A stretch of 63,056 nt of DNA, the filler included, from Lenisia limosa (lineage: Eukaryota; Protista; Breviatea): assembly GCA_001655205.1 (NCBI GenBank). It is 8 parts of 8 records of this genome, joined end to end, with 100 filler letters (N's around TTAATTAATTAA, not from the genome) between each part and the next. Parts side by side here need not be neighbours in the genome. Positions count along the whole stretch, not along the records: positions 21,360 to 40,791 come from LPNZ01001112.1; 7 more parts are not named here. One strand, 5' to 3'. The position numbers and the translations under genes were made by a program. Under the pieces are notes generated by a model, which worked only from the letters and a program-made list of their open reading frames with translations, searched no databases and was not told where the DNA came from. Of this stretch, positions 20,821-42,000 are shown piece by piece (within the stretch, counting starts at the first letter, position 1; each line of letters starts with the position of its first letter).

Positions 20821-21671
20821 AGAGTACTTACACCACCAACGTTTATCATTATAGATTCGAACCTTTAAAGTCGCTGTTCAGCATCGCTGTACAGTGGAGG
20901 GTCAACTGCGTGCTGTGTAGTGTTGAGTCAATAGTCACCACCATTGCTTACTCAATCTCGTTGGACAAATTTGGAGTAAGTGAGAATAAGTTCTATTTCT
21001 GGTTGTTTTCGATTCGTCAGGAATATTTCCTATATTTTACATCGTATCATGCACCTTCAAATATTGTAGATGACATAATACATACTAAATATAGTCAAAG
21101 CTCCGGAAATCATTAAAAATCTCCGGACATTTCAAAACTCCCAGACAGCTTGAATTTTCCCTATATAAGTACTATAAACTTCATTTCCCTGTTATTGTAT
21201 GAGTATGAGTATTGTCATTTAAATGTATTTTTTCTATACTACACACAGTGTTAAGAACANNNNNNNNNNNNNNNNNNNNNNNNNNNNNNNNNNNNNNNNN
21301 NNNTTAATTAATTAANNNNNNNNNNNNNNNNNNNNNNNNNNNNNNNNNNNNNNNNNNNNGGGGGGGGGGGGGATTGGAGAACATACATATGGTATAATAT
21401 ATATAGTACATATTACACATATACATGTACATACTATCTTGTATCATGGTTGTCCATGGCTCTCAATCTTATTATGAATGATCCTGTTGAATGTAATGAA
21501 GAAATATTAACAAGTTGAAAATATACTGTTTGTTCAACTGAATGTGGCTGTTTGTGTGGAGGAAAGATGAACTCTGCAATTATATGTATCATTAGATCTT
21601 GTGAGGTTTTACGATGACCCTTCAGTTTTCTGGTCGAGAGGCGATGATCCATTTTGAGAATGACAATTCAG

Positions 21672-24600
21672 ACTTTACACGAAGCGAAGAATGAAAACTC
21701 TTGGAACCAAGTTTGGTTGACTTACAACGCTATTAAAGTGAGTAATATTGAACATATTGTAATGAAAACTCCATTTCAGACATTCATTTAATTTTGTTTT
21801 ATTGAAAAAGAATTCATTATAACTCCATCACTTTTGCATCGCTAAATCAGCTACTTCAATTATTGGATTTTACTCTTTCACTATTAATAATTGTTTCCAT
21901 TACAAAGTCGACAATTGTCTTTATCATCGTATTGAACAATATGACCATTTAGCAAAATGTCAAGGGTGAAAGTTCCATGGATAACAGTGCAAAGGTTTGA
22001 AGGATGAAAATTTCAAAATATGTACGAGATAATGTACATATTCCCCATTGTTCTCTTCAATTTGTGTGATATTGTCTCTTAGAGACCAGTTACTACAAAC
22101 TCATTNNNNNNNNNNNNNNNNNNNNNNNNNNNNNNNNNNNNNNNNNNNNNNNNNNNNNNNNNNNNNCGCAGATATTGCAGCAGCGAGGTTTAGCCGAAGT
22201 TTCTTCAACTTGTTTATTTTCTTTCTTGCACTGCAACATGCCTATCTGCTGATCACTGCACTTCTTCACTTCAAAGTTTGTTGATAATAATGAGGGCCTC
22301 ATAATGATGACGTGAAGAGGGACATTCAATATTGATACGAACTAAACAACAAATTTATGACAAATTCCCATTTTCAAACCGGCTTTGAATTTTCAACCCG
22401 CAGTGTGAACCTCAACTGGACGGCTCGCATTCATTGATAGATGACCCTACCGTCCAGTGCTACACCGAGGAGTGGCACGATGCCGCTCGTGTGGCTCTTA
22501 TCGCTATTGCTGTGTATGGAATTGGTTTGTGGGTGATTTTATTTTAATCTTTTTTTGGGAATTTATGTGGGGACATTTAAATGTCTCCTATTATACCGTA
22601 ATCTTTTTGAATAAATAGCTTTCATGCTGAAGTTAATTGTCTTAATTTTCGAATCTGAAAGGTCTCTCTTGAATTAATTATCATTGTGAGAAAAGTTTCA
22701 ACTGTTCAGGAACCACTTATTAACCATGACCCATTTAGGTATTCCAGTCCTAGTTGTGACGCTTTTGATTAAGAGCGGCAAATCACTCTATGAACGCGAT
22801 ACTATTGAACTGTTTGCGTGGTGATTTGATAATTAATATTGTCCAATACCAATATTGATCAGATATGACCCAGGGTTCATCCTAAGTGAAGCATATGATC
22901 ATTGCGATTTGTCGGTCAATAATCACAGGAGTAGTTATGAGATAACGTTTGATGAGCGGATTTGATGAGTGAGTTGTGACAAAAATATATAGGCGTTGGG
23001 AAGGGTATGAAGCGTGAAATGTTATACAACTATCAGTGGCAATTTACTACATATAATTAACTGCATGTAGGACAGGCGGGTTGTACAACAGATATTTGCC
23101 GCAGCTCTATATGTGGGAAGTTATCATCATGGTGAGCAGGAGAGGATTTCAAATCGCATATTGTTCATTTCACTAATAAGTCAAATTATGACCCTTTAGC
23201 TCAGAAAACTCTGTGTCGTCCTTTTCTTCACCTTTTTCACGTCGCACGTTATGTACCAGCTTGTTGGAGGTCTAATAACCCTCTTTGTGGCACTGGAGGT
23301 GAGCGTGGATTGTCGTCAATTGTGGCATCATTATTCATCAAATGCTCTTTCAAACTGCCATACGTTTCCACAAAATTACCCAATGTATCAATTCAGAATA
23401 TTACATATAGAAATTTTGTCAACAAGAAACGATGGCATGCTTGTTCACTATCGCGCATTGATTTGAGAATCCCATAAATTTCTTCGAGTTTCTATCAAAT
23501 TCCATGGGATTCCCATGTAAAATATGGGAATTCCAACGTTTTACAAGATTCCCAAGTCGATGCTCCGTAGTGTTCTCGACATCAGTGCCATTACCCCCCG
23601 TCTAGCTCCAAGTGGTGTTCAAGCCTCATCAGTCGTACCACCTCATGTGGCTGGAGTACGTCGCACTATGCGCGTCCGTGGCCCTCCTCTTAGCTGGTCT
23701 GCTTCAAAATAATGATATATAATTAGGGCTTCATTTCGGTTCCAAAAAAGACTCAATTTCTCGATAAATCCTCGAAAACTATCGATATTTTCCCGAAACG
23801 AAGTGGAGATGGAATTTTAGAAACTGTAACTCTTCAGGTACTTTGTTCCTCGCGGGGATGCCAACTGAAGTGACTTATGAGTTAGTTAATTGGTTCTTTG
23901 ATAATAAGTTAATATCTTTTGTTATTATTTCCCCACAACGTGCTATTTATGCAATTTTTGGTTTTCGAAATGAGAATACGGAAGAACCTGGCTGAAGCAT
24001 TTCAGACTATCAGGGAAACTGGGTTACTTAATAGTATTGTTTCACCATGAGTTGCCTTAAAACTCTCTACACACAGCTTTATACTTGCCGTACCAGGGAT
24101 GTTGATAGTTTTGTCAATTTCTCATTCAATTCTACACAGTATTCTGTCAGCCACGGCCGTTCTGATCCTCATCGCCGCCTGTGTCATATTTGGAATTGTT
24201 TTTGCCAACCAGTCTATTTCCTTTGCAAAGGAAAAGGTATGAGAGGCCAAAAACTGACTACATACAATAGAGTCAATTCCACCATTATTCGAAAACTTTG
24301 AAAGTGACTGTTAGCCGAAAGAGAGTTCTTTTTACAATTTTTCACAAATATCCTCATTACTTGCAAATGATTAGGCTCCGATAAGACTGAAACCATTCAA
24401 TATTATTACTGGTATATTTTTTTTATACAAAGATTTACTTGATTCACTTAAGAAACACAGCTTTTTGCTCAAAACATGATTCATCATGCTGCCCAAATAT
24501 GTTCAGCTCATAAAAGTTCCAATTACCCCAAATCAGTCATTTGAGACAATATGGACATCTTACCCATTATACTCAGATAACAACCAACTCTGCGTGGACT

Positions 24601-27600
24601 CTTGGTAAGGCTTTTGGAGTTGTGACAAGTGGCAAAATTTCCGAGCTGTCAGAACAGGTTAGTATTTTGTATTTTGGGATATTTGATCACCACCACTGCG
24701 CTTACTTTTAGTACATTAGAAGCACTCCAGCTTATGCTCTCCCCATAACTATTTATTTTTTATTCATGGCATATGTATTACATGTATTACTTATTACATA
24801 TAATATATATATATCCAAAATATATCCAAGATAACATTAATTGACTCTTTCATTCATTTCCACGATAGGACATCAATCGAATGAAAAAGCTGACAGTTTC
24901 CGGTACCACTCAGACGAAAAGTCTTAACAGTGCCATTTTGGACATGGCGGAGGAGGCGGATACGCTGAAAGGTTTGTAACTTTTGGAATACCATAGACAG
25001 TGATGTTCTTTTTGAATACCATATACAGTGATGTTCTTTTGGAATCCCATATACAGTGATGTTCTTTTGGAATATCAGTGATGTTCTTCTGGAATACCAT
25101 ATATTACAGGATGTTCTTTTGGAATACTTGGTATCAACACCATATACAGTGATGTTCCACATTGTCTTTTGATCATTTGTATTTTATCAATTTTAGGAGC
25201 CATGGAAGGGATCATAGTATTTATTGGTCTCAAAGACAGTTCTGTTCTGTGGTCGAAATACCCTGAAGAGAGTAAAGAAATCAGCCAAGTCCTCACCAGT
25301 ATTATTGAGGAGCTTATACATTCATACCAGTGGGTTTGGGTAATCTTCTTCTGACATAGTATGTCAGTTACTATTGAATATATTATACATACACTTTCAG
25401 ATTTAACTGAGATCACAATTGCGTTAATTGTTACAGTAAATGTAGAAATCAAGCAATGATCTTATTCAAATTGATAGCATTTGGGTCTCTTCTCTTATCA
25501 GGATAAGAACATTAAAATATTGATATCTATCATGTTTTTATCAGATCGGAGAGCGGAGGGATGGAATAATAGAGCCTAACTCTACGCTGACATTTCAGTG
25601 GTTACGACCTTGGTGAGGATCAGGTTGCTGGATTTGGCCGACTTTGCTTCTTCGAAAATGCCTTCGATGCTGTTGACTTTGCTTTCACGCTGCACATTGC
25701 TATCGTTAAGGTATGCTTCAAAGGATTTACCGCATTGTCGAGCGTCACTACGTCTGATAAGTAATTCACTTCGGTTCGAAACAAGACTGAATTTCTCAAT
25801 AAATCGTCAAAAACTATCTTTTTCGAACCAGAGTGAAGCCCTACTTATGAACATGGTTTGGGTCAACATCTTATGTCTGATTTGGGTTCGGTGATGATAG
25901 TGGTAACTCTTTCACTACCCCTCATTTATAAACCAAACCAGTCCCAAAACGACCGCAAATATCTAAGATTTTTAAAATGAGACTTTTGTGAGATATGGGG
26001 AAGCCTTACCTACAATGCTCTTGGACATAAAAGTATAAGGATCTTTTTCTCACTGCTTAGAACGATTGGTCCGTGGCTGTACTGAGTTTGCCCCATTTCC
26101 ACTCGGTGGCAACGAGGCTCGACGAGTTAACCAATATTTGGTCAGGTCCACGCTTGTCTATTGTACTGGTACACACATTTGCCTATGGACTTAAACGAGC
26201 AATTGAGGAGTGGGTTGGTGAATTTTGGTGGAACGTGCACTTGAACTGTTTAACCTCAAGACTATTATTTTGTTAGTGAATATCTTCTTATTTTCATCCA
26301 GTGTAAGATGGTCTACATATCGCCTCGGTGTGATGTTTTTTTCTGGTGTCTACCCAGTATACAATGCTATACTATGTAGTACATCATATATACTGACTGG
26401 GATAAGTCTTGACATATTTTCCTTGGGAAATCACAGAGCAAATCAATCAAGACTTATCCCGGTCACTGTAAACCCATTTACTTCATGGAAAGTTGTAACG
26501 GACAGTTGTAAATGGATTTCTGCTTGCAATAACCATTGTAGAGCAAAAAAGAAGCTGAAAGATGATTATGAGAAACATAGCTTCACTTCATTAAACGATT
26601 GGAGGTCTACGTTCTTCAGATCAAACCCTAAAACTGTAATGACAGGGATGTTATGATATTCTTTTAACTGATAATGCACCTTTACAGGTTCTTTATGCCT
26701 CGTTTTGACCGACAATCGATCACAAGATCATTGAAAATGAGAATATAATATAGCTATGTATATCAATATATAACCGGTGGAATAACCTATTTAGTATATC
26801 ACTAAAATTTGGACAAATATCATACTTACTTGGTAGTTCATCATCGCTATAGGTTCCTTACGGCGTGATTCATCCTGACAAGTCGCAGTTCTATTCTAGT
26901 GATGTGGGCATGGGTGAAAAGGTTACTTTATCAGAATTTGTTGGCATCCATATCAGAGTCTTGAAATCAATGTAGACTTTGCTTTTAATCAATTTTTAAT
27001 GGACTGTTAATTTTCACTCCAAAATTTCTGATTAAATGATAATAGGAGTGTACCAAGTGTATACTTTTGACATGATCCCATTTCAATACAGTGAATATTT
27101 ACTATTTATCAATATATCCGTTTTTTGGGAACAATATGAAAAACTTGGTGAAAGCGTTTTGTCAAAATCTCAAATTTATTAATGACCATTAGGCTGCAAA
27201 AGCTGCCAGTGTGGCAGCCAAGGTTAAACGGGGTGATATCGTGATCACAGCAGGAGCTTGTGCGTTTCTTGAAGTCAAACAGGTCAGTGTAGACGTCGGA
27301 AGTGGAGTTCAAAATGACCAAAGTGAAGATAATTAAGTGCTAGATGATGATATTTTCATAATTGACTTTCTCCCGATAAACAAGGCTTAAGGCCCGAGCT
27401 AATCAGTACAGTATCAACGCATAAGTTAAAAAATGAATATTTTCTGTCTTTGACCAGAATTATAAACCAAAAACGCCATTGCTTATTTCTCTGTAGTCCG
27501 ACATCATGAAGCCGGGGTGGAAGCTGGTACACAGTACTCCCTACCTTCCTGAACCTCATATTTTAGTTACTCCACCAGGTTTGTATCGTTTTCATACAGG

Positions 27601-30600
27601 AACAGTTTTTTATTTCTCCCCTAATGAGCTGTATTTAGGGCTTCACTTCGGTTCGAAAACAGACTGAATGTCTTGATAAATCCTGAGTTTTTTTTTTGAA
27701 CCGAAGTGAAACTCAAGCAGTAAGGCATATGATTGGGTGAATTAATAGATCCTATGTACTTCATATGATATATTATAAACGCAATAGTGAAGATTGAAAC
27801 ATCCAATTTTTATGTTACTCTTTGTTTACATATTCCAACATGTATAACATGTGATGGAGTCACATCTGTTTACCTTCATACTCTAGGGTATGAAGAGAGA
27901 ATGGAGCGGCCAAAAATGGACGACTTGTTTCCTCCTGAAAGTACTAGTAGGGTAGATGTGTCAATTCGAACAATTCTCAAAATATCGAGACTAGAGTCAA
28001 AAGATGTTTATAAAGGCTGAATCCCTTATTCCTGATCATAAGTCAACCGACAATTTTCATGGACTGTAGCGCACGAAATGTCCACGAGAGAAAACTATGA
28101 TGATAAGATGAGCGGTCTCACGGAGTTCTTCAGTGACACTCCTGGTGTCTCCGCTTCACCTTCGCCCCAGGTACGAAGGTTTCTACTTCAACATCTAAGA
28201 ATTATGATGTAACTTTCATTTAATGAAATGGTATACAACTACTCAATTTAGAACAGCTGCCACTTGGATATTTGTATTATATCATATGCTATTCATTACA
28301 TGTTTGGAAATCATGGAAATGGTTCTATTAATACTTTTGGATTATTCTTTGAAAATTAAGACTCTTTTGGAATTGTACCTTGAAATAATTGTTTTAGATC
28401 CATGGATTCTTCATGTCGCGAACTGGACAGAGTAGTCTACAGCTCAACGCTACTTCCCAGCCTTCAGTGAAGACCAAAACTCCTGATAGCAATCTACAGA
28501 CATTTTTGACGGATGCAGCTCTAGAGGCTCGTGATATTGGTAAAGAATGTAAGTAAGGGTACGTGTGAATGGACAAAATTTGAAAATATACTGTAAAGGG
28601 ATTTCTTGTAATGTCTTGCTTGGAATTTCATAATTAGTTGTGTTTTACCGCATGAAAAGAGGCCAGACCTTTTGCAAGCAATGCAACAGTTCAACTCTCA
28701 TTTATTTAGTGCAAAAAGAGCAGATACGTGAAAGTCGCATTGCCTCCATACTCAACATTGTAGCAGCATGTCTCTGGCTAGTTCATAAAGTGGGAAACGG
28801 GGAGGTTAACATGAACAAAATACTCAGCATACATGAATACTTATTATATCCTATTTGAATCATGAGGGAATACAGAAACCATATTTCAACCTGCACTTTC
28901 AAGTATACGTTTTCATCACAATAACAAGAAATCACCACAACTTACCTGACACAGACCGCAGAATTCACTGCCAATCCTCTTGGTGACTATTTCCACATCA
29001 TCACTTGGATCTTTGTCTTGGGATTGGCATTCTTGTCGTGGTCCGTTCTCCTTTTTTCTCCAAACATGTCCAAAGCGGGAATATTGTCTTATTGGCTCCT
29101 TGTTTCCTGTCTTTTGAGGTAGGGCTAGTTTATGGATATTTTTTTCAAATGCAAATACACTCCTATCACTCCTTGTAGAGGACTATTTTTGGAACTGTTT
29201 CCAACTATCGGTTTTCAACTACCCATTGCTGTGACAAACATTAACAGGTTTAGAATTTCAGTGGCGATTCTGATTACGGCGCTGGACTCCATGCATGCCA
29301 TCGACAAAATAACGAGCCTGGTATGAGGGTGGACCAAATGTTGTTTTAAATGATACCATTGACCCAATGTCATCAAATATGACCCAAATTTGACAGAATA
29401 GGGCGAAACGTGCTTGCACATTATTTTGACGCTTACGGTATCATCGTTGGACTCAGCAATAGCCCTTCCCCTGGCCTGCTTCCATGGCATCGTGTTTTGG
29501 ATATTCACTAATCAGGTGGGCTGCCGCCACTATACCTAACAGATAAGGCTTCCCAGTTCTCTAAAGACTAGTGAATTATGATATATGATACTAATTTTAA
29601 GACCACAATTACGCACGACTCTATTGTTCCAATTTCATTGTAACAATCCCTGCAAGAAATAACACATTTTCAGTCAAATCTCTCCGAAAACGACCGAAGT
29701 TTCTGTATGTTCTTCCTCACCATCTCGGTGCTTCTCGGGTATGTTGAGAAAAGAGCATGCCCAGTGCACTGATATATGTACCTAAATATATTCTCATAGG
29801 ATGTCAATATGATGTACAAACATTGGGGTCGACATGTGTTTTGTAAGATTCAGTCTATTCTTTGCCATCCTTGTCATTAACAATCGTTTTAGCCATGTAT
29901 ACACGAAGTATCTAGGCTCTCAAGTCATTCACGCAGTAAAAGTGAGTTGTGTGGTAGACAGGTTCTGGATATATTACACTATGTTTAAAATGCCAGCATA
30001 GCGTTATCAAGTATTGTGGATATCGTAGATATACCGTCGATAGTTTAACACCAGTATTTCTTAGAGAAGATATTTTTAGACCACAACAAACATTTTTGTT
30101 GTTATTTTGCCACTGATTGCTGAATAACTTCAAAAGGTTCAACGAGCAGCAAAGCAAGCAACAAGATCACTGATGGCGTCCCTGCACAACATGATCCCTC
30201 AAGTCATTGCTGATAAGCTTCAAGTCAAGGGTATGCATCACTAACACATTTTTTGGCTGAACTCCTAATCTATATTTCATCTGCCCTTTCCCACCTTGGA
30301 GCCATAGCATCTGTAAGTTATCAGCAGCAGGAAAACTATCCATATTGTATTAATTCTAATTTCCACAGATAGATAATTTAAAAAGAGTGTGTGAGATGCC
30401 ACCAATCTTAATATTCAGATTTATTAGGATATTTTTTTGTTATATTTTCATTCTTACCTGTGCCCCAACAAATTAGTGCTCTGGAAACGCAGTTGACTTT
30501 TTATATTATTTGATCGGCTTCACGTTGGTAATATAAGAGTAAATTACCTGACAATACTCGATTGTCACTTTTGGTCCCTTGAAACCCCTCACTATTTCAG

Positions 30601-33600
30601 AGTTGGACGTAGCTCGTTTGCCTAAAAGAGGTTTATCAAAGGTTTGTGTGTAGTGAGGGTATTTTTATTAAGATATCTGAGGATGTAAAGTAAAGCCTTC
30701 CAATCATACTATATTTGTACTACATGTATGACACTTCACATCATATTTTATCAGCTTTGTTTTACATACTGTTGGGATAATGATGCAATATTCATAATCA
30801 CATTGTTGGAAATTATGGACATCTGTATATTCTATTGAATTTGCGCTCGCATGGCCATCATTCTTTATGATTGTCAAGTCAAGGGCAACTAACTCCTTGA
30901 ATTGAAGGGACGCCATACAACTGTCCTAAATAATAAACGCTTGGCCCCCAAATCAAATAAGCATTTACATTCTTGATTTATCAAAGGTTATTATGTGAAA
31001 TACGCTTTAATACCTCTGATAATATTCACTGATTAAGGAGTCGAAGGTTGTCAGTGGAGAGTTCTCTTTGAACAAGTCTGGTAATTCACCAAGTCTGATG
31101 GCTTTCGAGAGGCTGACTAACATCTCATCCAACTCCATCCCGAAAGCAGAGGAATGTGGGAGGTGGTCAGCATATTATTATCAAATAGTAAATATTTTTT
31201 GGAACATTGGTTTTGAATCTTTGAATTCTGAAATGTAAATATTGCAAAATGTCGTATTCTGCTATGGGCAGAATTGAGTCTTAACATGAGTATTATTTCA
31301 TGAAACTCCTCAGTTAAATTTCTCGAGACTCTTTGTTCAATTTATATTAACTAAATGGCTGTTTCATAACAAACGATTCCACTAAAGAATATATTGTCAT
31401 AAATCATGCACAAATTCCTATCGTAAATGAGGTTCCATCCCCCATCACCCTAATTTCTTCCTCCTCCTGGGAAAATGGATATGAAAGGGGAGTAAAATGC
31501 ATATTTCCAAGTAACCAGGTAGGTGTCTTTCCTTCCTTCGTTGAAAGTGCCGAGTCCTATTCGTCTGTAACCGTCTGCTTCCTTTCTTTGAGTAACTTCA
31601 GTGAACTTTCAATGGAAATGCCCCCTCGATTTGCCATGGACGTTGGCGGGGTAGATAACTTGGTCTCATTTTCCGGTTTATCATGGCGTTGTTATTATCA
31701 TTATATTTCAGTCACATGTAAAAAATCAATTACATACTAAAGTCAGCCTCATATCATGCCATTCTGTTTATCACAATTGTTTTCACTTATTCGCAAACAA
31801 TCCATTATTATCTATATTCTCTATTCCACATCGCACCTCACTAACATGTTCAGCTTGTGTCCGCTGTGTTCAACAGTCTTGACACAATCACTGAACGGTT
31901 CGGAGTATTCAAAGTCGAAATGATCAGCAGCGTCTATTTGGCCTGCTCAGTAGGCTTTGGCGTCATTATTCGTTCTCCTTTTTGGAGAATTCCCATACTG
32001 TGTGTTGTAGTGAGTCCGATTATGTAGCTAATTGATTTGTCTTGTCTTTATAAGCTATATTCACTTTTGTCACCTTCGTCACACTAAGAACGACCTGAAA
32101 CACCGTTTACCTATTTCATTTTATATTATATGCATATAATTTTCCACCTACTACCCGCTCTCAAAACGGCTTCGACCGTTCTCTTACCACTCAGAAATGG
32201 CTAAAGCTTTGTTTGGTTGTTGTTTTCAAATATCTCAAATGTTAACCCAGAAGAGTTTATTTTGGATGTTTTTTTGTTTCATAAAACTTGGATTTTACCA
32301 CTTAGAACTGTCCGAACGCTGATGCTGAGCACGCAGGACGCGTCATTGCCTGGGCAGTGGCCGCATTGGACTCCGTCCGTAACGGTTCTTTCCCTCGAGT
32401 CAACGAGAAAGCCATTGAGATCAAGGCTGGCGTGCACACGTAAGGTTACATACAGTGACCGGATAAGTCTTGACCGATTTCCCTTGAGAAAAAATGCAGC
32501 ATTTTGGTCAAGACTTATCCTGGTCACTGTATCTTGTGACTAGTTTCTTGGATTTGAGTGTAAACGTGTCTTGGATTTGAGGGCCTAGTTAAGGTTATAA
32601 TGAAGCTAGTTTTTTATCCATATTGATATGGGATATTTTCTTAGCCAACATATCAGTGACAATTCAGCGGCTCCCTTATTGGAGGCATAATCGGACGCAC
32701 TACCTTCCACTTCACACTTGGTAGGTCACTGTTATTCTTTGTGTTATTGCACAGAAATATTCTAACTTCCCTCTATGTGATACTGTGGTAAGGTGACACA
32801 ATGTTAACCCTTGACCTATTTAATAAGACAATCCTTTCTTTCTCTTGTATTGAATCTTAGCGAATTGTCCTGTACTTAGAATGACCTCATTTTACTCAAA
32901 TTTCAAAAGATAATGTAAACTTAAGAATAACCCGTTCCAGTTAGGTCTACTGAATTTCTCATTATTGTAAAGTCAATCTGGACTGTAGAGATGCCTTACT
33001 ACACTGTACTAACCCCCCAGTTGGAGATACGGTCAATACAACATCACGCATTCTCTCAGCTTGTGCCCCAAATTCAGTTCTTGTCTCTGAAGCCACAGCC
33101 TTGGCATTGACTGAGAATGCGAACTGCACTGTACCAACTGCCGAATCTATGTATGGAAGGATATTGTTGCGTAGTATAAAATAAGGCCTAATGTTACATA
33201 CATGTATATATCTATGGATACAACTTGATTTTCGGGATTCAATTTACATTTTATTCATCAGTTATTGAATCGCTCTTTGTTTAGTTAGTATTTGTGGCTT
33301 GCACTATCCATTGCATTTTTGCGTGTATAGGATTTTTCTCTTCTGAACAACAATTCGAAGTAACAAACCAGGTACCAACCCGTCACATCATGCCTTCCCG
33401 GCACCCTCATATTTCGAGGCGACATTGCCACAACCGAGTCATCATTCTCGCACATGGACGGCCTGAATGACGACACTAGCCTCCATTCTTCTGGACTGTT
33501 TGGCCTTTGTGCCAAATATTACGTAGCCCGCTATGCCCCTGCTACCACCACCCAATCCGGAACATGGACCCGACCATTGGACGAAATCAAATTGGTGGGA

Positions 33601-36600
33601 AGAAGGGGCTTTGAAACTTAACAGGTTCATATAATGCCCAAAACCTATTTTGATCAATGGATTTTGCTTCTGACTAGGGCTTCACTGCGGTTCAAAAAAG
33701 AGTGAATTTCTCGATAAATCCTCGAAAATTATCGACATTTTTACCAATCTTTTTCGAACCGAAGTGAAGCCCTACTTCTGATAATTGTCTCGCAGTACAG
33801 ATCTTGTGAACAATTTGTTTCAATTACACAGTACTCATCATTGCCATCACAGACTCTCGAATCTCTGTTGTCTTTCTCAGACCTACCATTTTTATGATAC
33901 TTCAGTGCTGTAAGAACCAGAACTTCCAGCTGACGTTCAATGGAAGTACAAAGCTCAAAGGTCGTGGCAACGTCAACACATTCTACGCCTCCACCATTCA
34001 TGGAATTACGCCGTCTGTCGGCATGTCAAACAGTTCTTCCACAACATTATCCAATATCTTCAAGCCGTACCTCGCAAGCATGGTTTGACTTGGGGTAACT
34101 CTATTCTTGTCATTTTATTTGCTTTCACATTTCAACACTATTTTCAAATGTCCATTTTCCCAAAACTTCAATGGTTTTTGTTTCGAAATAGTCCCATCAT
34201 TAGAAAATACATGATGTTTATTGCTCGACTAACAAAATTGGTGTGAATAGGGATGCACTTTGTATTCATAAAACAATTGAAAACGAGAAAACCAAAGATT
34301 TAGTATTGACCCCCACAAGTATACCAAAAAGACTATAAAGCCCCCCACTCATGACCCGTTATCCCTCAGCTTGTTGCCGACCGAGACACCGGCGTTGACT
34401 CCGAAGACACTGCAGTCATGTGGCCGCCGGCAATAGAGGACACACAGCCGGAGTCTTTCGCTGAATGGGCCAAATATCTGAGTACTAAAGATGGTGGGTT
34501 GAGATCTTCAGTATAGTTTCAAATAGAAGACATTGACAAATATTTGTTATGATAAATATGGTGTCTAATAATGATGTATGTAGATTCCAAAGTGAACGAG
34601 TCTACACCTTTCCCTAATCAACGCTCGGTTACTTGGGGTATCAATTTTGTCAAAATTATCATTTCACTACTGTGTTGTGTTCTAAACCTACATTATTCTC
34701 TGGTGGAAATATGACTCTTTATTAACATAAACGATAGACCCATTTTAAGCTCCTCAAAATTTCAACACAACACGCGTTGGCCCACACCACACCTAGCAGT
34801 CTTTTATTCCTCTGTCATTAATCTCCCCCCACACAGCAATCAGCAAATGTCACCACTGAAGCTTTCATCTCCTTCCATCTCAACCTGACACGGATATTTT
34901 TTACTCTTTTCGGAGCTGTCTCACTCATGGTTTTTGGAAACTACTTTAAAATGTAAGTTGAGGTGAACCAAAATCATGTTTATCCATTTCAACAATTGGA
35001 ATTGCCATCCAATACATCCAAAAGCAAAGTTCTGTTTAGGGTTTCATTTGTTTTATGTCACGTCCATTTATGTGAAATTTTTTTATTCTTCTTCACCACG
35101 GCAGGTTGGAATACCCACACCAAAGCGCAGTATTGACAGCTGCTTCGGTTTCCATTGGTGTCTTGGTGGGCGGTTGACCTTTGTACAAGGATATGAATTT
35201 GTGACAGACTAGATTGTTAATATACAACAACCGTTTCAGTCCTGGTCTGAAATGGCAATTTTCTATACTTCACCCTGCTTCCCACGCCTTTCACTAGTCT
35301 TGTTTTTATTTAACAGATTTCACCTTTTGCCCTTCGTTCGCCCCCTGTTATACACCCGCACCTAAGCAAGTCAATACAGGCATTAATGCTGGCCTTTCTT
35401 GTGGCAATTTTTGGCATGTATGTCAAGCTTTTTGCGCAAGTGGAAAGCGGCAGTGACGATGGTATGATTGCCCACCTTATAGCTCTATTTACTGGGATAT
35501 AATAGCAATGATTTCTCTTTCGGTTTCTAAGGCTCATAGTACAGTATAATCATATGTATCATAATTTGTTGTTTTGTGTAAGTGACCGTGGTGCATTATG
35601 GAAACGTAACCAAATCAACTTTAAAGGACAGCTTATCTATTAATAGCTTTAATTACCCTTATCGGTGTCATTCTCACATTTACCAGATTGGTCCTATGAA
35701 ATGCTCTTTTGCGCAAGTCTCTCGTTCGCATGGGCCACCCTGACACCATGTCACAACATTTTTAGTATGCCATAACTTATCCTATCTTTCAGAAATGGTT
35801 ATTTGACTGACGATGTTAATGTTGTTGCATTGCTCAGGATTGATGTTAATGCTAACGCTTCAATTTTCTAATGATTTCAGCAATCAGCTTTGTTTTACAT
35901 TGCTTCACGTGTGGGCCGATCATGGCCTATTTTACCCCAAACCTCTCCTATATTGTGGTATGTTTGAGAACATATGGCAATCTGTTCAAATTTTGAAACG
36001 GTTTAAAAAATCATCAGTTATTCTTGTTAATTAAAACCATTTGTCAAGTGTCAAGATCTGTGGTTTTTGTCCCAATGTTGAAAGAACTTTATTATTGATC
36101 GACCTTTGCTGAAGTAACCATTTAGATTGCGGAGAGCTGTTTAATTTGGATGTTTATCTGCTTTTTGGGATTTTCAGTTCGGGTGAAACGTGACAAGTAC
36201 TTCACTGCAATCTTCAATAATTCCAAAGTAGGATACGAACTGATTCATAGATATAATATGTATAGATATAATATGTATAGCTTTTTTTTTATCATCTTGC
36301 ATTATAGCTCAATAATTCTAGATTACACACAATATTTTGCTGACATATTAGCACCTTTCTTCAGTGAGTCAACAAACATGGCGGCTTATTTCACTGCTTC
36401 TGCCGCAACATGTGGTTAACGAGTTTTCAAAGGTGAATTGGACTGGGCAAGGGTGTGGAAATGGCATCTTCTCCGTATCACAATGAGTATCTTTTCCGCT
36501 CTTGTTCTAATCTACATATAAGGTAGAGTATATTGCTCTTCATTTTCACCAAGTTTATATACATATTGTCAAACACAATTACCAAAAACGATTCTCAATT

Positions 36601-38470
36601 CTCTCAAGTGTACATAACCACACAGGCGGATTACCAGCAGGTGAATAACATGATGTAGAAAGGCGCAGTAAATGAGGTGATTTCACGTGCCATTGTAATG
36701 CAATGTGACCTTGTCGGCTTCACCACTCTTTCTGCCAGTTTGAGCCCCTCTGATGTATGGGGGCAACAATGTGGTGAAATGTTGCTAAGTTTATTACTCC
36801 CCACAGCCTGAGCCGCATAAATTAGATCTTCAATGAAGTCCGAAGACAATATTTCAATGCACTTTTAAAACCAATCTATAGAAACACATATCGATGTATA
36901 TGGCGTAGCAATTCAGAGTTACATTACTTTGTTTTCTTATCTTTTCAGGTCTTCAACTTTGTGAATACACTGTTTTCGACCTTTGACGTCCAGGCTGAAA
37001 AGCTGGGTATTGAGCGAATCACAACTATTGGTGAGTTTTTTAAGATTGTACTGTAGGATACATATGATATGTGTCTCTAGTTTCAAAAATTATGGACAAA
37101 CAATGTACAAATGCAAAACTTCTGTGTTTTCTTTCATTTAATTTTGTTTTATAGTCTTTAGGGGATGCCTACATCTGTCTGGCGATGGAGGATAAGGATG
37201 ACGACCAACACCACATCCGCTGCATGTCTAAACTGGCTTCTGTCATGCTGCCTCTTCTTCATGAGGCTCTTTCAGCTGTTTGCGGCTGCTTTTAGTCAAT
37301 TTCTCATTGTTATTATTTGGGCTTGGAAATCTGTCTCATAGTAACATGTTACAACAATGTGTCAATTTACAGATTCACGTCATGCTGTTTTCCGTAATAA
37401 CGATGTAGTGCCGCCTGTCCACGAAATGCGTTCGAATCCGAATTGGCCTGGCCCAGGGCAATGTGTGGGGGTCCATTGTCGGCTCCCTATCTCCTCGGTT
37501 TGCGGAAGGGTAAAGAGTGTGGAATTAGAACAAGTAACCAAAACTGGCCATTTATGAAACGACAGTAAGAATGACGGGGTACTATATAGGGAATACGTAT
37601 GGTGTGAAATAGACCAGTAAAGGAGAGATTGGATTCAATGGAGAAATAATGTCTTGGACCGAAGCGAAGCCGAAGTTGTGTCAAATGCCAAAAGGGCATC
37701 ATATCAACATACATGCTGTGACAATGCGTTAAGTATTACTGATTTTGACTCTATTGTATCTTGCTCATTGACTCATTTACTGATATATTGATACACTACT
37801 TGTGACCTAATATCGCAGGTACCTAGTTTTTGGCCCTACCGTGGATCGAGCCGATCTATGCGAGCAAAGTGCCCATGAAAACTGCATGGTCATAGACTCC
37901 ACACTTGCGGCAACTCCCACTTTCAGACGGTGAGCACAGTATGAGAATTGTTGAAATTAAGAAATTCAAACTACCCTATCACCATGGACAACTTTCTTCA
38001 AAAAGTTCAATCAAATTCCTATATTATGACATGCGCAAAGAGTCACTATTCTTTATAACACAGGAGGTTACAATGAAATAAAAATATTATGCATCTTGTA
38101 TTATTTATCAGCCATGCCCTACACCCGGCAAGCTACAACAACCGCAAGGCTGCACCCGAGGGGGCTGTCTCCGTGGACCTCACGTGTATACACGGTAGGC
38201 TAACATAATTTTTCCATGTTATGCAATTACTATTTCATTGAAATGGAAGGTTCTTTTGAGAAATATGGAAAATGAGAGGTCATTATTTTATTTTTTGAAA
38301 TGTGGCAGATTTGAAGTGGACAAAAGACACTTACTGGGTATTAGTTTCCAAAATGAAAAGCAAAATTCAAACTTACATTACATTTTGATTCCTCAGAGCC
38401 CCTTATCACCGAGACGATTCTTCACACCCTCGAGTCAGTTGGAAGTGATGATAGCCTCTTCAATGATTAA
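21672..38470 (+). CDS. Large membrane class III nucleotide cyclase, probably guanylyl: multi-TM sensor block + degenerate cyclase domain + TM + catalytic domain + TM + catalytic domain; 5' end missing
   Basis: More than 35 GT-AG exons, most junctions phase-checked, terminal exon 38397-38470 (..SDDSLFND TAA). Motifs: CEPQLDGSHSLIDDPTVQCY..YGIGIP, LYNRY...WEVIIMLRK, IIVFIGLKDSSVLW, SLHNMIPQVIADKL, FKVEMISSVY, IKAGVHTG, VGDTVNTTSR, KLKGRGNVNTFY, LLLPQHVV, QCDLVGFT, RITTIGDAY, IRIGLAQG. A few junctions (26.2-27.9 kb, 30-31 kb, 34.5-36.3 kb) are not fully resolved. Confidence 0.85.
22172..24236 (+). CDS. N-terminal multi-TM block (6 helices visible) of the type that follows GCC2/GCC3 Cys-rich ectodomains
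   Basis: Exons 22172-22275, 22404-22524, 22739-22817, 23071-23131, 23200-23298, 23606-23696, 23838-23880, 24140-24236 are phase-consistent and hydrophobic, with C..G..L..D..hqC and LY..Y..WE..h.RK motifs. Confidence 0.8.
23726..23808. mobile_element. MITE family B copy
   Basis: TA-GGGCTTCATTTCGGTTCC plus core. Confidence 0.75.
24985..25158. repeat. Tandem repeat, ~28 bp x ~6 (cyclase intron)
   Basis: Unit GGAATACCATATACAGTGATGTTCTTTT. Confidence 0.9.
25197..27282 (+). CDS. Degenerate cyclase-homology domain (CHD0)
   Basis: IIVFIGLKDSSVLWSKYPEE / YHGYDLGED / FENAFDAVDFAFTLHIAIVKNDWS / GPRLSIVLVH / AAKAASVAAKVKRGDIVIT follow, in order, the TDI.DST.LW / GYEVKT.GD / A......Q..L...W / GLRVRMGIH / AARV....GGQI pattern, but the catalytic residues are replaced. 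Confidence 0.7.
25765..25841. mobile_element. MITE family B copy
   Basis: TTCACTTCGGTTCGAAAC...TTCGAACCAGAGTGAAGCCC-TA. Confidence 0.75.
26393..26468. mobile_element. MITE family A copy
   Basis: GGGATAAGTCTTGAC...CAAGACTTATCCCGGTCACTG-TA. Confidence 0.8.
27638..27714. mobile_element. MITE family B copy
   Basis: TA-GGGCTTCACTTCGGTTCG...GAACCGAAGTGAAAC. Confidence 0.78.
31523..34082 (+). CDS. Cyclase domain CHD1 (substrate-specifying and transition-state half)
   Basis: VTVCFLSLSNF and KVEMISSVY lack both metal-binding Asp; FHFTLVGDTVNTTSR retains Asn and Arg; KLKGRG present. Confidence 0.9.
32453..32529. mobile_element. MITE family A copy
   Basis: Both TIRs and TA flanks, in a cyclase intron. 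Confidence 0.85.
33677..33772. mobile_element. MITE family B reference copy (TA-GGGCTTCACT..GGTTC.AAAAAAGA ... TCTTTTTCGAACCGAAGTGAAGCCC-TA), ~96 bp
   Basis: ~27-bp TIRs, TA on both flanks, ATCGA-rich core; at least 25 related copies in the window. Confidence 0.85.
36659..37929 (+). CDS. Cyclase domain CHD2 (metal-binding half)
   Basis: VMQCDLVGFT and RITTIGDAY retain both Asp; RYLVFGPTVDRADLCE lacks the Asn/Arg pair. Confidence 0.9.
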
Positions 38471-39065
38471 TTCCCCCTGGGATTGATATCATTTTGTTTA
38501 GTTGTGTATTCACGATTTTTCTTGTTTTTCATGGTGATTAGTTGTTTCTTGAGTTGAATAGATAGTATTCCTCTATTTCCACTTCTCTGCATTCGGTTTT
38601 CCAACAATTTCGGACCCCTAAATTTGGAGTGAATTAAAAGTCTAACATCCAATTTAGGAAAGGACGGTCAAAAAAGGAATAAACACTTGCAAAAGACGAA
38701 AGGGTAAATATTTTTATTGGAATTTTGAATGAAGCTTATATTAAAAAAACTTTTTTTTTTTTTTCTTTTTTTTTCCCAATTTATGTTTTTTGATGCAAAT
38801 TGCATTTCAGCACCTCCAATCGTCAAAATAGCTCTTCTATTAAACGCAACAAAGGACTTCATTGCAGTGCGCCTATCAGAGTGGGGGGCAAAAACATTAT
38901 GCGATAGTACATCTGATATGTACATGCAATAATATGTATTACAATCAGTGTATTGTACTATAAAAAAGGTTGTGTCTGGCCGAAGCTGTCTCATGCTTAT
39001 ATTGTATATTCACTGTTATGATATATTCCAGGGTTTTGGTGAAAAGAAGAAATGCATTAAATAGA

Positions 39066-42000
39066 TCACTGTGAGAGTTTCTTAATGTAGTTGCTGACTT
39101 CTTCACTGAAAGCGTCCTAAAAGGTAAAAGTATGGCAAAAATAGGCAAAACACTCAGTAGAAATGAGAAGTAAAAAGGAAGCTGACCAAACAATCATATT
39201 GAAAAGAGAGTTGTGAATAATAGAGGATATAGAGGCTATGAATGGGGTATATGGTGTCCTTCACCACCTTAGGCACATTTCGATATCACAGAGTTTTTTC
39301 TTTTTACTTAGTGCTTCCCTGCGGTCCTAAAATGGCCGTCTAATTTTAGGTATTGATCGAGGCTTTATTGAGAGATTTGGCCTTTTTTTGGAACTGTAGG
39401 GACTCTAAGTATATATCATATGTACATATCATTTATGTATTGCATGCATATCACNNNNNNNNNNNNNNNNNNNNNNNNNNNNNNNNNNNNNNNNNNNNNN
39501 NNNNNNNNNNNNNNNNNNNNNNNNNNNNNNNTTCATCTCCAAAGGTGCGGATGGCTAAAGAAGTGAAAGGCGGTTGAGATGATCAAAACAATACTCCTGA
39601 TATTCTTGTTTCCGTTAGAGAAGAAACTAGGCTTCACTTCGGTTAAAAAAAAAAGACTGAATTTCTCGATAAATATCGATATTTGCTGGTCTTTTTCTTA
39701 CCGAAGTGAAGCTACTGACAGCACACACCAACATACCGCATTTTTGCCCTCCAGGCGGAAAGTCAGAGTGTAGTTCTGATATGTAAGAAGGTTTATGGAG
39801 GGCTCTCGGGTCCATGTACTACCACTGGGGCTTCACTTCTGTTCGAAAAGAGACTGAATTTCTCGATAAATCTTCGATAAATATCGGTATTATTTCGGTC
39901 TTTTTCGAACTGAAGTGAAGCCCTCAATACCACCATGTTTCATCTATCAAGGATTTAACGATCATTTTATTTTTGAATGACTTGTCGTGTGTTGCTTACA
40001 CATTCATATCAATATCTTTTACATTTCCTCTTGCAGAAAGATATAAAAGAGCCATATTTTAAAATTTCAAAATGATGTGTTTATTCAAAATATTACATAG
40101 ATTGTCATTGATCATTAACAACATACACTATGCTTGGGTATGTCGGCCCGTACATTGACACACTCTATGATATCATAATGTGAGTAGAAATAGACTATTA
40201 TCATCTCATTTCTGTCCCAAAGATATCCCCATGAGAAACTATCGACAATGCATTCATCTCCCCTCACCGAGCTGTAGGGCTCTATTTGTGATGCCAAAGA
40301 AAGGTAGTACTTCTTACCCTGGAAGGTAATTATTGCCAGGGCCTCAATCAATCTTTTCATTTTGTTTCGGAGGACGCCAACATACCTTGCGTTGACGCGC
40401 AATGATGAGGGCGCCCTTCTCGTAGTACATGGCCAGGAAGTAGAGGAGGCAAGAACACGCCATGTACACGCCGACGCAAGAGTAGTAGACAAGCTGAGCG
40501 TGGGGGTACGTTTCAGGGTATAAATGCCCAGTGGAGGCTATATAGTTATAAAATAGCAAAAAAAAAAGGCTTTAAAATGCATAAAATGGGACATGTTCGA
40601 GATGTACATTTGTCAAAATTGTGTTGACGATACTATGACCCTTGTTTACAAGTGCTCCCGAACTAGGGCTTCTACGGTCCGTAAAAGACCGTTTAAATAT
40701 CGATATTTATCAAGGATTTATCGATATATTCGGTCTTTTTTGGGACCGTACGGAAAACCTAACTGAACATTAGATCATACGTATGAATTATNNNNNNNNN
40801 NNNNNNNNNNNNNNNNNNNNNNNNNNNNNNNNNNNTTAATTAATTAANNNNNNNNNNNNNNNNNNNNNNNNNNNNNNNNNNNNNNNNNNNNCAACAAAAC
40901 AAGCAAAGCCCAGACCAGACCAGTCGCTTCTACAGCACCGCATCGCATCACTCCAGCGTGTGCAATTGGAAAATTTAGCAAAAATAATAACACACAACCC
41001 TCCCCCCCAGAAACAACTCTGTTGGCTGCAAAAATGGAAATCTATTAAACTCCCCGCTACCTTTGCCTGAATTACCCCCCCCCCCACTCTGATTTTGCTG
41101 TCAAAACGCCTGCGAGGGACAAGGAAATCCTCATTAATTCCCCTCTTGAGAAGGGCTACGACGACCTCAGCGTTGGCCGAGTTAAGACCTTGGGGAATTA
41201 CGGTTGTGCTGCATTTGGCATTTGGTATTTGGGGAATTAGAGAATCATCTCAAAATGGATTGGAAATTGAGGGAGAAGACCCGGGGGGGGGGGGGTTCTG
41301 GTATNNNNNNNNNNNNNNNNNNNNNNNNNNNNNNNNNNNNNNNNNNNNNNNNNNNNNNNNNNNNNNNNNNNNNNNNNNNNNNNNNNNNNNNNNNNNTAAG
41401 GAATCCAACCATATGCATAAGGAATCCAAACTTGCCATATAAGGAACCCAACTTACCATAAGCGGAACCGAGGGCGTTATCGAGGGTTCTCAGAATACGA
41501 TAGTCTTCAACAATCAAAGCGTTCAATAATCGTCCGAGAAGAGCCTAAATATCATGAGTGCAAGCGTCTTGGAAAATCCTATAAATGTAGGGTAAAATAA
41601 ACGTTGAGCAAAGAGAATTGCAAGCAGGAATATTCATGTAATCATCTTAGTCATTATAATATTATCATTACCATCACCCCTCCCCCACTAATCATATGAT
41701 AAACAGTACCGGAATAAGCCTTGGCCGATTTTCTTTGGGAAATCATATTGCAAATCTGTCAAGACTTATCTCGGTCAATGTATAAAAGGGATACCCCCCC
41801 CCCCCCCNNNNNNNNNNNNNNNNNNNNNNNNNNNNNNNNNNNNNNNNNNNNNNNNNNNNNNNNNNNNNNNNNNNNNNNNNNNNNNNNNNNNNNNNNNNGG
41901 CCTCGCGAACTAAGAGAGCCACTGAATATAAACGGTCCTCCGTAATTCCAGCGGATGCGTCGATGAGATTGGAAATGGATTGTACGGGGTTGGAGGCAGG

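Follow-up and report, generated by a model that had tools for sequence, protein, structure and literature searches.

A 5′-truncated membrane cyclase gene of Lenisia limosa with an inverted guanylyl-cyclase-like core and a possible third cyclase-like module in front

The membrane guanylyl cyclases of Toxoplasma, Plasmodium and ciliates, as well as GCA of Dictyostelium, share an inverted order of their two catalytic domains, with the nucleotide-binding domain first and the metal-binding domain second (PMC6592433). In the alveolate enzymes, the first domain (GC1) carries the purine pair Glu and Ala (E/A) and the second (GC2) the aspartates (PMC6592433), while GCA of Dictyostelium discoideum goes back to Roelofs et al. 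2001 (cited in the same article). Here, we describe a gene of the breviate Lenisia limosa (assembly GCA_001655205.1) located on the piece at positions 21360-40791 (LPNZ01001112.1) of a 63,056-nucleotide window, that is, the whole stretch of DNA analyzed, which joins eight parts of this genome. The product is predicted to be a multi-pass membrane class III nucleotidyl cyclase of the inverted protist guanylyl-cyclase kind, and we somewhat favor reading the stretch as most of one large cyclase gene, truncated at its 5′ end, with a third cyclase-like module in front of the core. The three cyclase homology domains (CHDs) considered below are termed CHD0 (a candidate), CHD1 and CHD2 in gene order.

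Exon chain and catalytic core

The piece is intron-rich and eukaryotic in character, with a G+C content of ~38%, and neither tRNA genes nor Rfam families are present in it. Exons were set by coordinates after reading three frames at each G+C-rich island, and borders, phase and stops were checked by script, yielding a curated chain of 43 plus-strand exons (22172-38470) with AG/GT at every border, all junctions in phase and no stops within exons or split codons. The chain amounts to 4685 nt, or ~1560 visible residues, and ends at a TAA stop codon (38468-38470), past which no exon-like islands occur on the plus strand for at least 2.3 kb. G+C content is ~0.47 in exons versus ~0.33 in introns (~50% in the reliable cyclase exons versus 33-36% around them), and 75-nt G+C islands coincide with every exon recognizable by translation. 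Some junctions are forced; for example, the frame from 33170 to 33906 can only be kept with exon 33419-33594. Within the limits of sequence evidence, this exon chain is real. The TAA end had already been proposed in the preliminary description of the locus, together with a join from 28540 to 28962 that our model reproduces: 28539 is the last position of the exon (donor GT at 28540) and 28962 the first of the next one, and the split codon G/AA (the slash marking the junction) encodes Glu.

Introns of the gene average ~250 nt, the longest one (30231-31522, 1292 nt) lying between the pre-CHD1 exon and CHD1. This intron holds small G+C islands at 30583-30622, 30876-30917 and 31072-31148 that could not be fitted into frame and could represent alternative exons or remnants of repeats.

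Kyte-Doolittle windows run over the ordered exons placed hydrophobic stretches in three blocks only (residues 9-199, 561-729 and 1135-1299), for which these windows alone suggest ~6, 5-6 and ~6 helices, respectively; the hydrophilic regions comprise ~360, 400 and 260 residues. The second and third blocks belong to the core, the features of which are as follows.

28962-29118, 29179-29320, 29402-29515, 29674-29738, 29848-29941, plus strand: membrane block 2, 5-6 helices, residues 561-729
30137-30230, plus strand: pre-CHD1 helical exon, ending LQVK/G in phase 1; coding score 17.6
31523-31650, 31854-31949, 32306-32439, 32668-32720, 33021-33170, 33419-33594 (insert), 33906-34082, plus strand: CHD1, C2-like, by PF00211, our own profile and chain score
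34370-34493, plus strand: acidic linker exon between CHD1 and membrane block 3, in-phase chain; coding score 18.5
34844-34952, 35105-35165, 35317-35461, 35687-35764, 35881-35957, 36126-36227, plus strand: membrane block 3, ~6 helices, residues 1135-1299
36352-36432, plus strand: pre-CHD2 helical exon, in-phase chain, ending in phase 0
36659-36754, 36949-37030, 37162-37277, 37409-37509, 37819-37929, 38112-38194, 38397-38470, plus strand: CHD2, C1-like, with the C terminus and TAA, by PF00211 and chain score

Pfam, PDB, hhalign and database searches were run exon by exon, and profile scoring over the ordered exon list. Partial PF00211 matches were recovered in CHD1 at 31845-32024 (profile positions 32-65) and 32954-33181 (127-163), and in CHD2 at 36826-37053 (28-64) and 37415-37508 (99-123); all four are collinear within their domain and, being exon fragments, each stays below the whole-domain cut-off. 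Hidden Markov models (HMMs) of our own, built from fetched bacterial cyclase domains and run with filters off over the 676 pieces of the contig that lack stops, gave most of the top ranks to CHD1 and CHD2 exons, with a best E value of 5.6e-6 for CHD1, others of 0.03 and 0.06, and further matches. An exon-chain score, in which the profile alignment is carried from exon to exon and compared with shuffled sequences, reached 72 for CHD1 (null 17.6 ± 3, z ~18) and 48.7 for CHD2 (null 16.5 ± 2.4, z ~14), and remained below the shuffled means (z < 0) for control membrane and linker exons. CHD1 and CHD2 can be assigned with certainty, on sequence grounds, to the class III cyclase domains.

The catalytic residues of both domains are complementary. 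CHD1 has Ser at both metal Asp positions, Glu at the Lys/Glu purine position and, three residues ahead of the Gly of GDTVN, a Thr; it also keeps Asn and Arg, the residues by which class III cyclases hold the ribose and the transition state. On the other hand, CHD2 carries both metal Asp residues (CDLVGF, TIGDAY), with Asn and Arg replaced (GPTVDRADL). The metal Asp pair is, in short, found in CHD2, and the purine pair, Asn and Arg in CHD1. The gene also shows the topology of transmembrane adenylyl cyclases, namely a catalytic domain behind each of two blocks of ~6 helices, with the C2-like CHD1 preceding the C1-like CHD2, that is, in the inverted arrangement. By analogy with class III pseudo-heterodimers, CHD1 and CHD2 would pair head to tail to give one active and one dead site, so that modules 2 and 3 would constitute a pseudo-heterodimeric guanylyl cyclase of inverted order. 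The Glu found at the Lys/Glu position suggests GTP as the substrate, and the product is probably cGMP. Collectively, these data agree with the preliminary description, which had proposed the succession of membrane block, CHD1, membrane block and CHD2, as well as the likeness of the pair to the alveolate and Dictyostelium enzymes.

Compared by description, Dictyostelium GCA is alike in having a CHD behind each of its two ~6-helix blocks, in the inverted order and in the lack of a P4-ATPase part; it differs from the Lenisia gene, which has an insert exon in the first catalytic domain and seems to add a front six-helix block with a dead cyclase-like domain. The insert (33419-33594) is a G+C-rich exon of 176 nt that adds ~59 residues to CHD1, downstream of the helix that follows GDTVN and ahead of the last KGRG hairpin, and matches no Pfam family. 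The alveolate P4-ATPase-guanylyl cyclases (TgATPaseP-GC, Plasmodium GCalpha/beta and the ciliate enzymes) share with the Lenisia product the inverted GC1/GC2 order, Asn, Arg and a purine pair of Glu and a small residue in GC1, and the Asp pair in GC2 (PMC6592433), and are likewise very large proteins that cross the membrane many times and carry an additional membrane module at the N terminus; the purine pair is E/A in Toxoplasma and E/T here. Mammalian AC1-9 and mycobacterial Cya/Rv1625c are alike in the class III fold, the sequence of six transmembrane helices (6TM), helical domain and CHD, and the pseudo-heterodimer logic, whereas the C1-like/C2-like order of AC1-9 is reversed here and Glu stands for Lys at the purine position. 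Modules would number three in the Lenisia gene, as against two in mammals and one in Rv1625c.

The exon piece 32954-33181 (76 residues) found no relative among 1.8 billion representatives at E values up to 0.001, a search that covers close kin of that exon only, and a word search with the same piece returned no candidate. Two HMMER matches to it (a tandem-repeat open reading frame and a NACHT-ankyrin protein) were discarded as spurious repeat proteins by Pfam. The core is of the known inverted protist guanylyl-cyclase kind; a non-exhaustive search of the literature found no three-domain membrane cyclases.

The front of the gene and its link to the core

Upstream of the core, the exon chain comprises the features below.

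22172-22275, 22404-22532, 23200-23298, 23606-23696, 24052-24236, plus strand: membrane block 1, ~6 helices, residues 9-199, G+C islands
24577-24657, 24890-24971, plus strand: juxtamembrane and helical linker before CHD0, in-phase chain, ending TLK/G at a phase-1 intron
25197-25329, 25599-25710, plus strand: candidate CHD0, N-terminal half, beta1-alpha-beta2/3-alpha-like, by exon-chain alignment and ESM-atlas
26061-26234, 27193-27282, 27497-27578, plus strand: presumed CHD0 C-terminal half, in phase, G+C islands; weakest exon borders of the model
27887-27946, 28070-28170, 28398-28539, plus strand: Ser/Thr/Pro/acidic linker exons from CHD0 to membrane block 2, in phase

Membrane block 1 starts with a helix in exon 22172-22275 and has two Cys in the short loop between helices 1 and 2. 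The ~6 helices bear out the six visible ones counted previously at the front of the gene, and not their proposed association with GCC2/GCC3 repeats as a receptor block: no Pfam family, GCC2_GCC3 Cys-rich repeats included, was detected on 22389-22544 or 22168-22281. Because the Cys pair sits between two helices and Pfam is silent, the front block looks like an ordinary six-helix cyclase membrane anchor and not like the stub of a receptor ectodomain. A P4-ATPase identity found no support either, as Pfam revealed no P-type ATPase family on any visible front exon piece, although an ATPase may lie further upstream, where the 5′ end is missing. The visible front module is indeed, as had been proposed, something other than the P4-ATPase of the alveolate enzymes, from which it differs by following the plan of a cyclase module, with the true N terminus missing.

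The link between this front part and the core hinges on the intron at 27579-27886. With leave-one-out matrices built on the other introns of the gene, donor 27578 scored 7.5 and acceptor 27887 scored 7.6, both above the gene means and within the top 1-2% of GT/AG sites. The intron is in phase and, with 308 nt including a copy of a repeat resembling miniature inverted-repeat transposable elements (MITE-like), of typical length for the gene; neither AATAAA nor ATTAAA occurs in 27283-28070. One gene is favored because of these strong in-phase sites, the typical intron, the absence of a poly(A) hexamer and the empty flank beyond the stop, and it is likely that the CHD0 side and the core belong together.

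Two tandem genes on the same strand, with the upstream one seen only in its 3′ part and ending shortly after 27578 or 27282, are the less likely arrangement, yet one to be reckoned with. The upstream gene, with six helices and a decayed cyclase domain, may then be the second half of a paralogue that has diverged or is decaying, or a monomeric protein of the 6TM-CHD type, and the downstream one a complete GCA-like guanylyl cyclase of 12 helices that would start at an ATG at ~27.90 kb, with exons 27887-28539 as its cytosolic N terminus. In-frame Met codons do exist in exon 27887-27946 and the next two exons, of which that at 27.90 kb could begin a second gene, and translation continued past the donors runs into stops at 27334 and, for donor 27578, at 27665. 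Furthermore, the 12-helix two-CHD core on its own is a known complete architecture (PMC6592433), and tandem cyclase paralogues and pseudogenes are described as common in protists (PMC2914791). Two genes would nevertheless require that 308 nt, part of them MITE-like, house a 3′ untranslated region (UTR), a promoter and a 5′ UTR; the strength and phase of the two splice sites, the lack of the hexamers and the rise in exon G+C that begins at acceptor 27887 likewise speak against two genes.

A candidate cyclase-like domain in front of the core

In a single gene, the domain at 25.2-27.6 kb occupies the position that CHD1 holds in its own module: six helices precede it, then a helical linker with a K/G end and a phase-1 intron. 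Its first two exons (25197-25329 and 25599-25710) align to profile positions 11-49 and 54-91, in the same register as in CHD1 and CHD2. The score of this N-terminal half was reached by 1 of 600 shuffled sequences with a first profile and by 0 of 300 with a second one from other subfamilies, which corresponds to p ~0.002 against shuffles; against natural non-cyclase segments, of which 1 in 39 reached it, p is a few percent. The language-model search of ESM-atlas returned a PF00211 cluster as the first match for 25199-25327 (0.92), and 8 of the 10 best family matches fell in PF00211 or its clan. We regard this domain as probably cyclase-derived, with somewhat greater confidence than its membership in one gene with the core. 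The aligned part has Gly at the first metal Asp position and Glu at the second. Because the first metal Asp is absent and the second half unrecognizable, CHD0, if a cyclase domain, is predicted to be catalytically dead. Of the degenerate pseudo-cyclase in the preliminary description, the N-terminal half is retained, in cyclase register and devoid of the first metal Asp, while the C-terminal half went undetected.

The exons preceding CHD0 (24971/25197) and CHD1 (30230/31523) share a K/G phase-1 end, whereas that preceding CHD2 ends in phase 0. The similarity between the pre-CHD0 and pre-CHD1 exons is not significant (124 of 2000 shuffles), and the shared end may be a trace of a duplication between modules 1 and 2. 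Pairwise comparison of equivalent exons across the three modules detected nothing significant, not even for CHD1 against CHD2, and therefore says nothing on which module was duplicated.

Several observations weigh against this interpretation of the gene, as do the Met codon at 27.90 kb and the read-through stop at 27665. Splice sites were hand-picked, so that phase agreement along the chain is supportive, not decisive, and only moderately informative; the searches with exon piece 32954-33181 yielded no relatives that would support the model by conservation; and the predicted GTP specificity rests on a single residue pair (E/T). For CHD0 itself, Pfam, PDB phmmer, our own HMMs and hhalign against 27 bacterial cyclase domains gave nothing significant, with the proviso that exon-wise PDB phmmer is low in power, as the true CHD1 and CHD2 exons barely match either. 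The C-terminal half (26061-27578) showed no cyclase signal by any method and scored below the shuffled mean, and 1 of 39 natural non-cyclase segments scored as high as the N-terminal half. The donor at 26234 scores ~0, the weakest splice site of the model, and is followed by an intron of 958 nt; this weak region may represent wrong exons or a decayed domain. An alternative exon for the second half, 26853-26972, was rejected on its out-of-phase acceptors.

These nulls, from the failure of any exon at 25.2-27.6 kb to reach the Pfam, PDB or hhalign threshold to the low score of the second half and the natural segment that equals the first, would also fit one gene in which this region is an unrelated alpha/beta domain, the first 80 residues resembling a cyclase by chance. 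We deem this improbable, for two profiles agree on the correct register over two consecutive exons, the independent language-model search places 25199-25327 nearest to PF00211, and the position is identical to that of the CHD in the other modules, behind six helices and the linker with its K/G phase-1 intron. Similarly, the unrecognizable second half of CHD0 and its weak borders could be taken as signs that the front part is a decaying, pseudogenized partial duplication not expressed as protein, with only the 12-helix core being functional. This seems very improbable, and is weakened because a dead remnant is expected to gather stops and frameshifts, while the 16 consecutive front exons are open throughout, have canonical sites and compatible phases, and resemble coding sequence in G+C content.

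Together, a likely single gene and a probable cyclase origin of CHD0 give the full three-module reading about an even chance. The same polypeptide would then carry a third module ahead of the core, made of six helices, a helical linker and a cyclase-like start. Its front domain would most likely be a regulatory or scaffolding pseudo-cyclase, or else belong to an additional sensor block in the membrane that is coupled to the catalytic pair. The most specific version, namely one polypeptide with three tandem modules of 6TM, helical linker and CHD (~18 helices), the first of them a dead regulatory or sensor pseudo-cyclase, is tentative and falls slightly short of even.

The 5′ end, repeats and what a third module would mean

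Two features precede the exon chain.

21672-21737, plus strand: candidate upstream exon, the sole exon-like piece left of the gap, unlinked to the chain, one open frame, flanked by AG and GTGAGT, ending in phase 0
22106-22166, no strand: assembly gap (N); the frame is open on its right side from 22168, with AG at 22170-22171

The gene had been proposed to start at 21672. However, exon 22172, the first after the gap, needs one carried base (phase 1), and 21672-21737 therefore cannot be joined to it directly in frame; nor can continuity over 22106-22166 be shown. Pfam gave only a chance-level FBA_2 match on the surrounding region (21648-21788). The gene has lost its 5′ end either at this gap or upstream of it. 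The contig itself starts with a run of 14 G (21360-21373) that looks like a sequencing or assembly artefact.

Introns and flank of the gene are dotted with repeats. A palindromic MITE-like family with terminal inverted repeats, 69-86% alike, is found at 23726-23789, 25761-25857, 27638-27701, 33676-33788 and 39828-39939, with inverted copies at 39630-39679 and 40695-40762. Every copy is either intronic or flanks the cyclase gene, and their translations recur as look-alike peptides on both strands. A second, hairpin-like repeat (26389-26470 and 32461-32531, both intronic and 79% alike) is built as a 40-nt inverted repeat around a 2-nt loop, and a tandem repeat of ~28 nt in four copies, 62-90% alike, occupies 24980-25099 in the intron before the first CHD0 exon. 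Past the gene end, a G+C island at 40353-40514 has open frames on both strands and a chance-level Pfam match to RTBV_P46 (E 0.034); part of a neighboring gene or of a mobile element may lie here.

The role of the six-helix anchors in class III cyclases is a long-standing open question, and recent work treats them as receptors. If the front part of the Lenisia gene were a separate or decaying gene, the remainder would be an ordinary member of the protist guanylyl cyclases. If, on the other hand, the three-module reading holds, the added anchor and its dead catalytic domain, joined to an otherwise standard catalytic pair, would be a natural example of a membrane module retained for its regulatory and not its catalytic role, and the route of duplication and fusion that leads from one to two modules would have gone one step further in some eukaryote.

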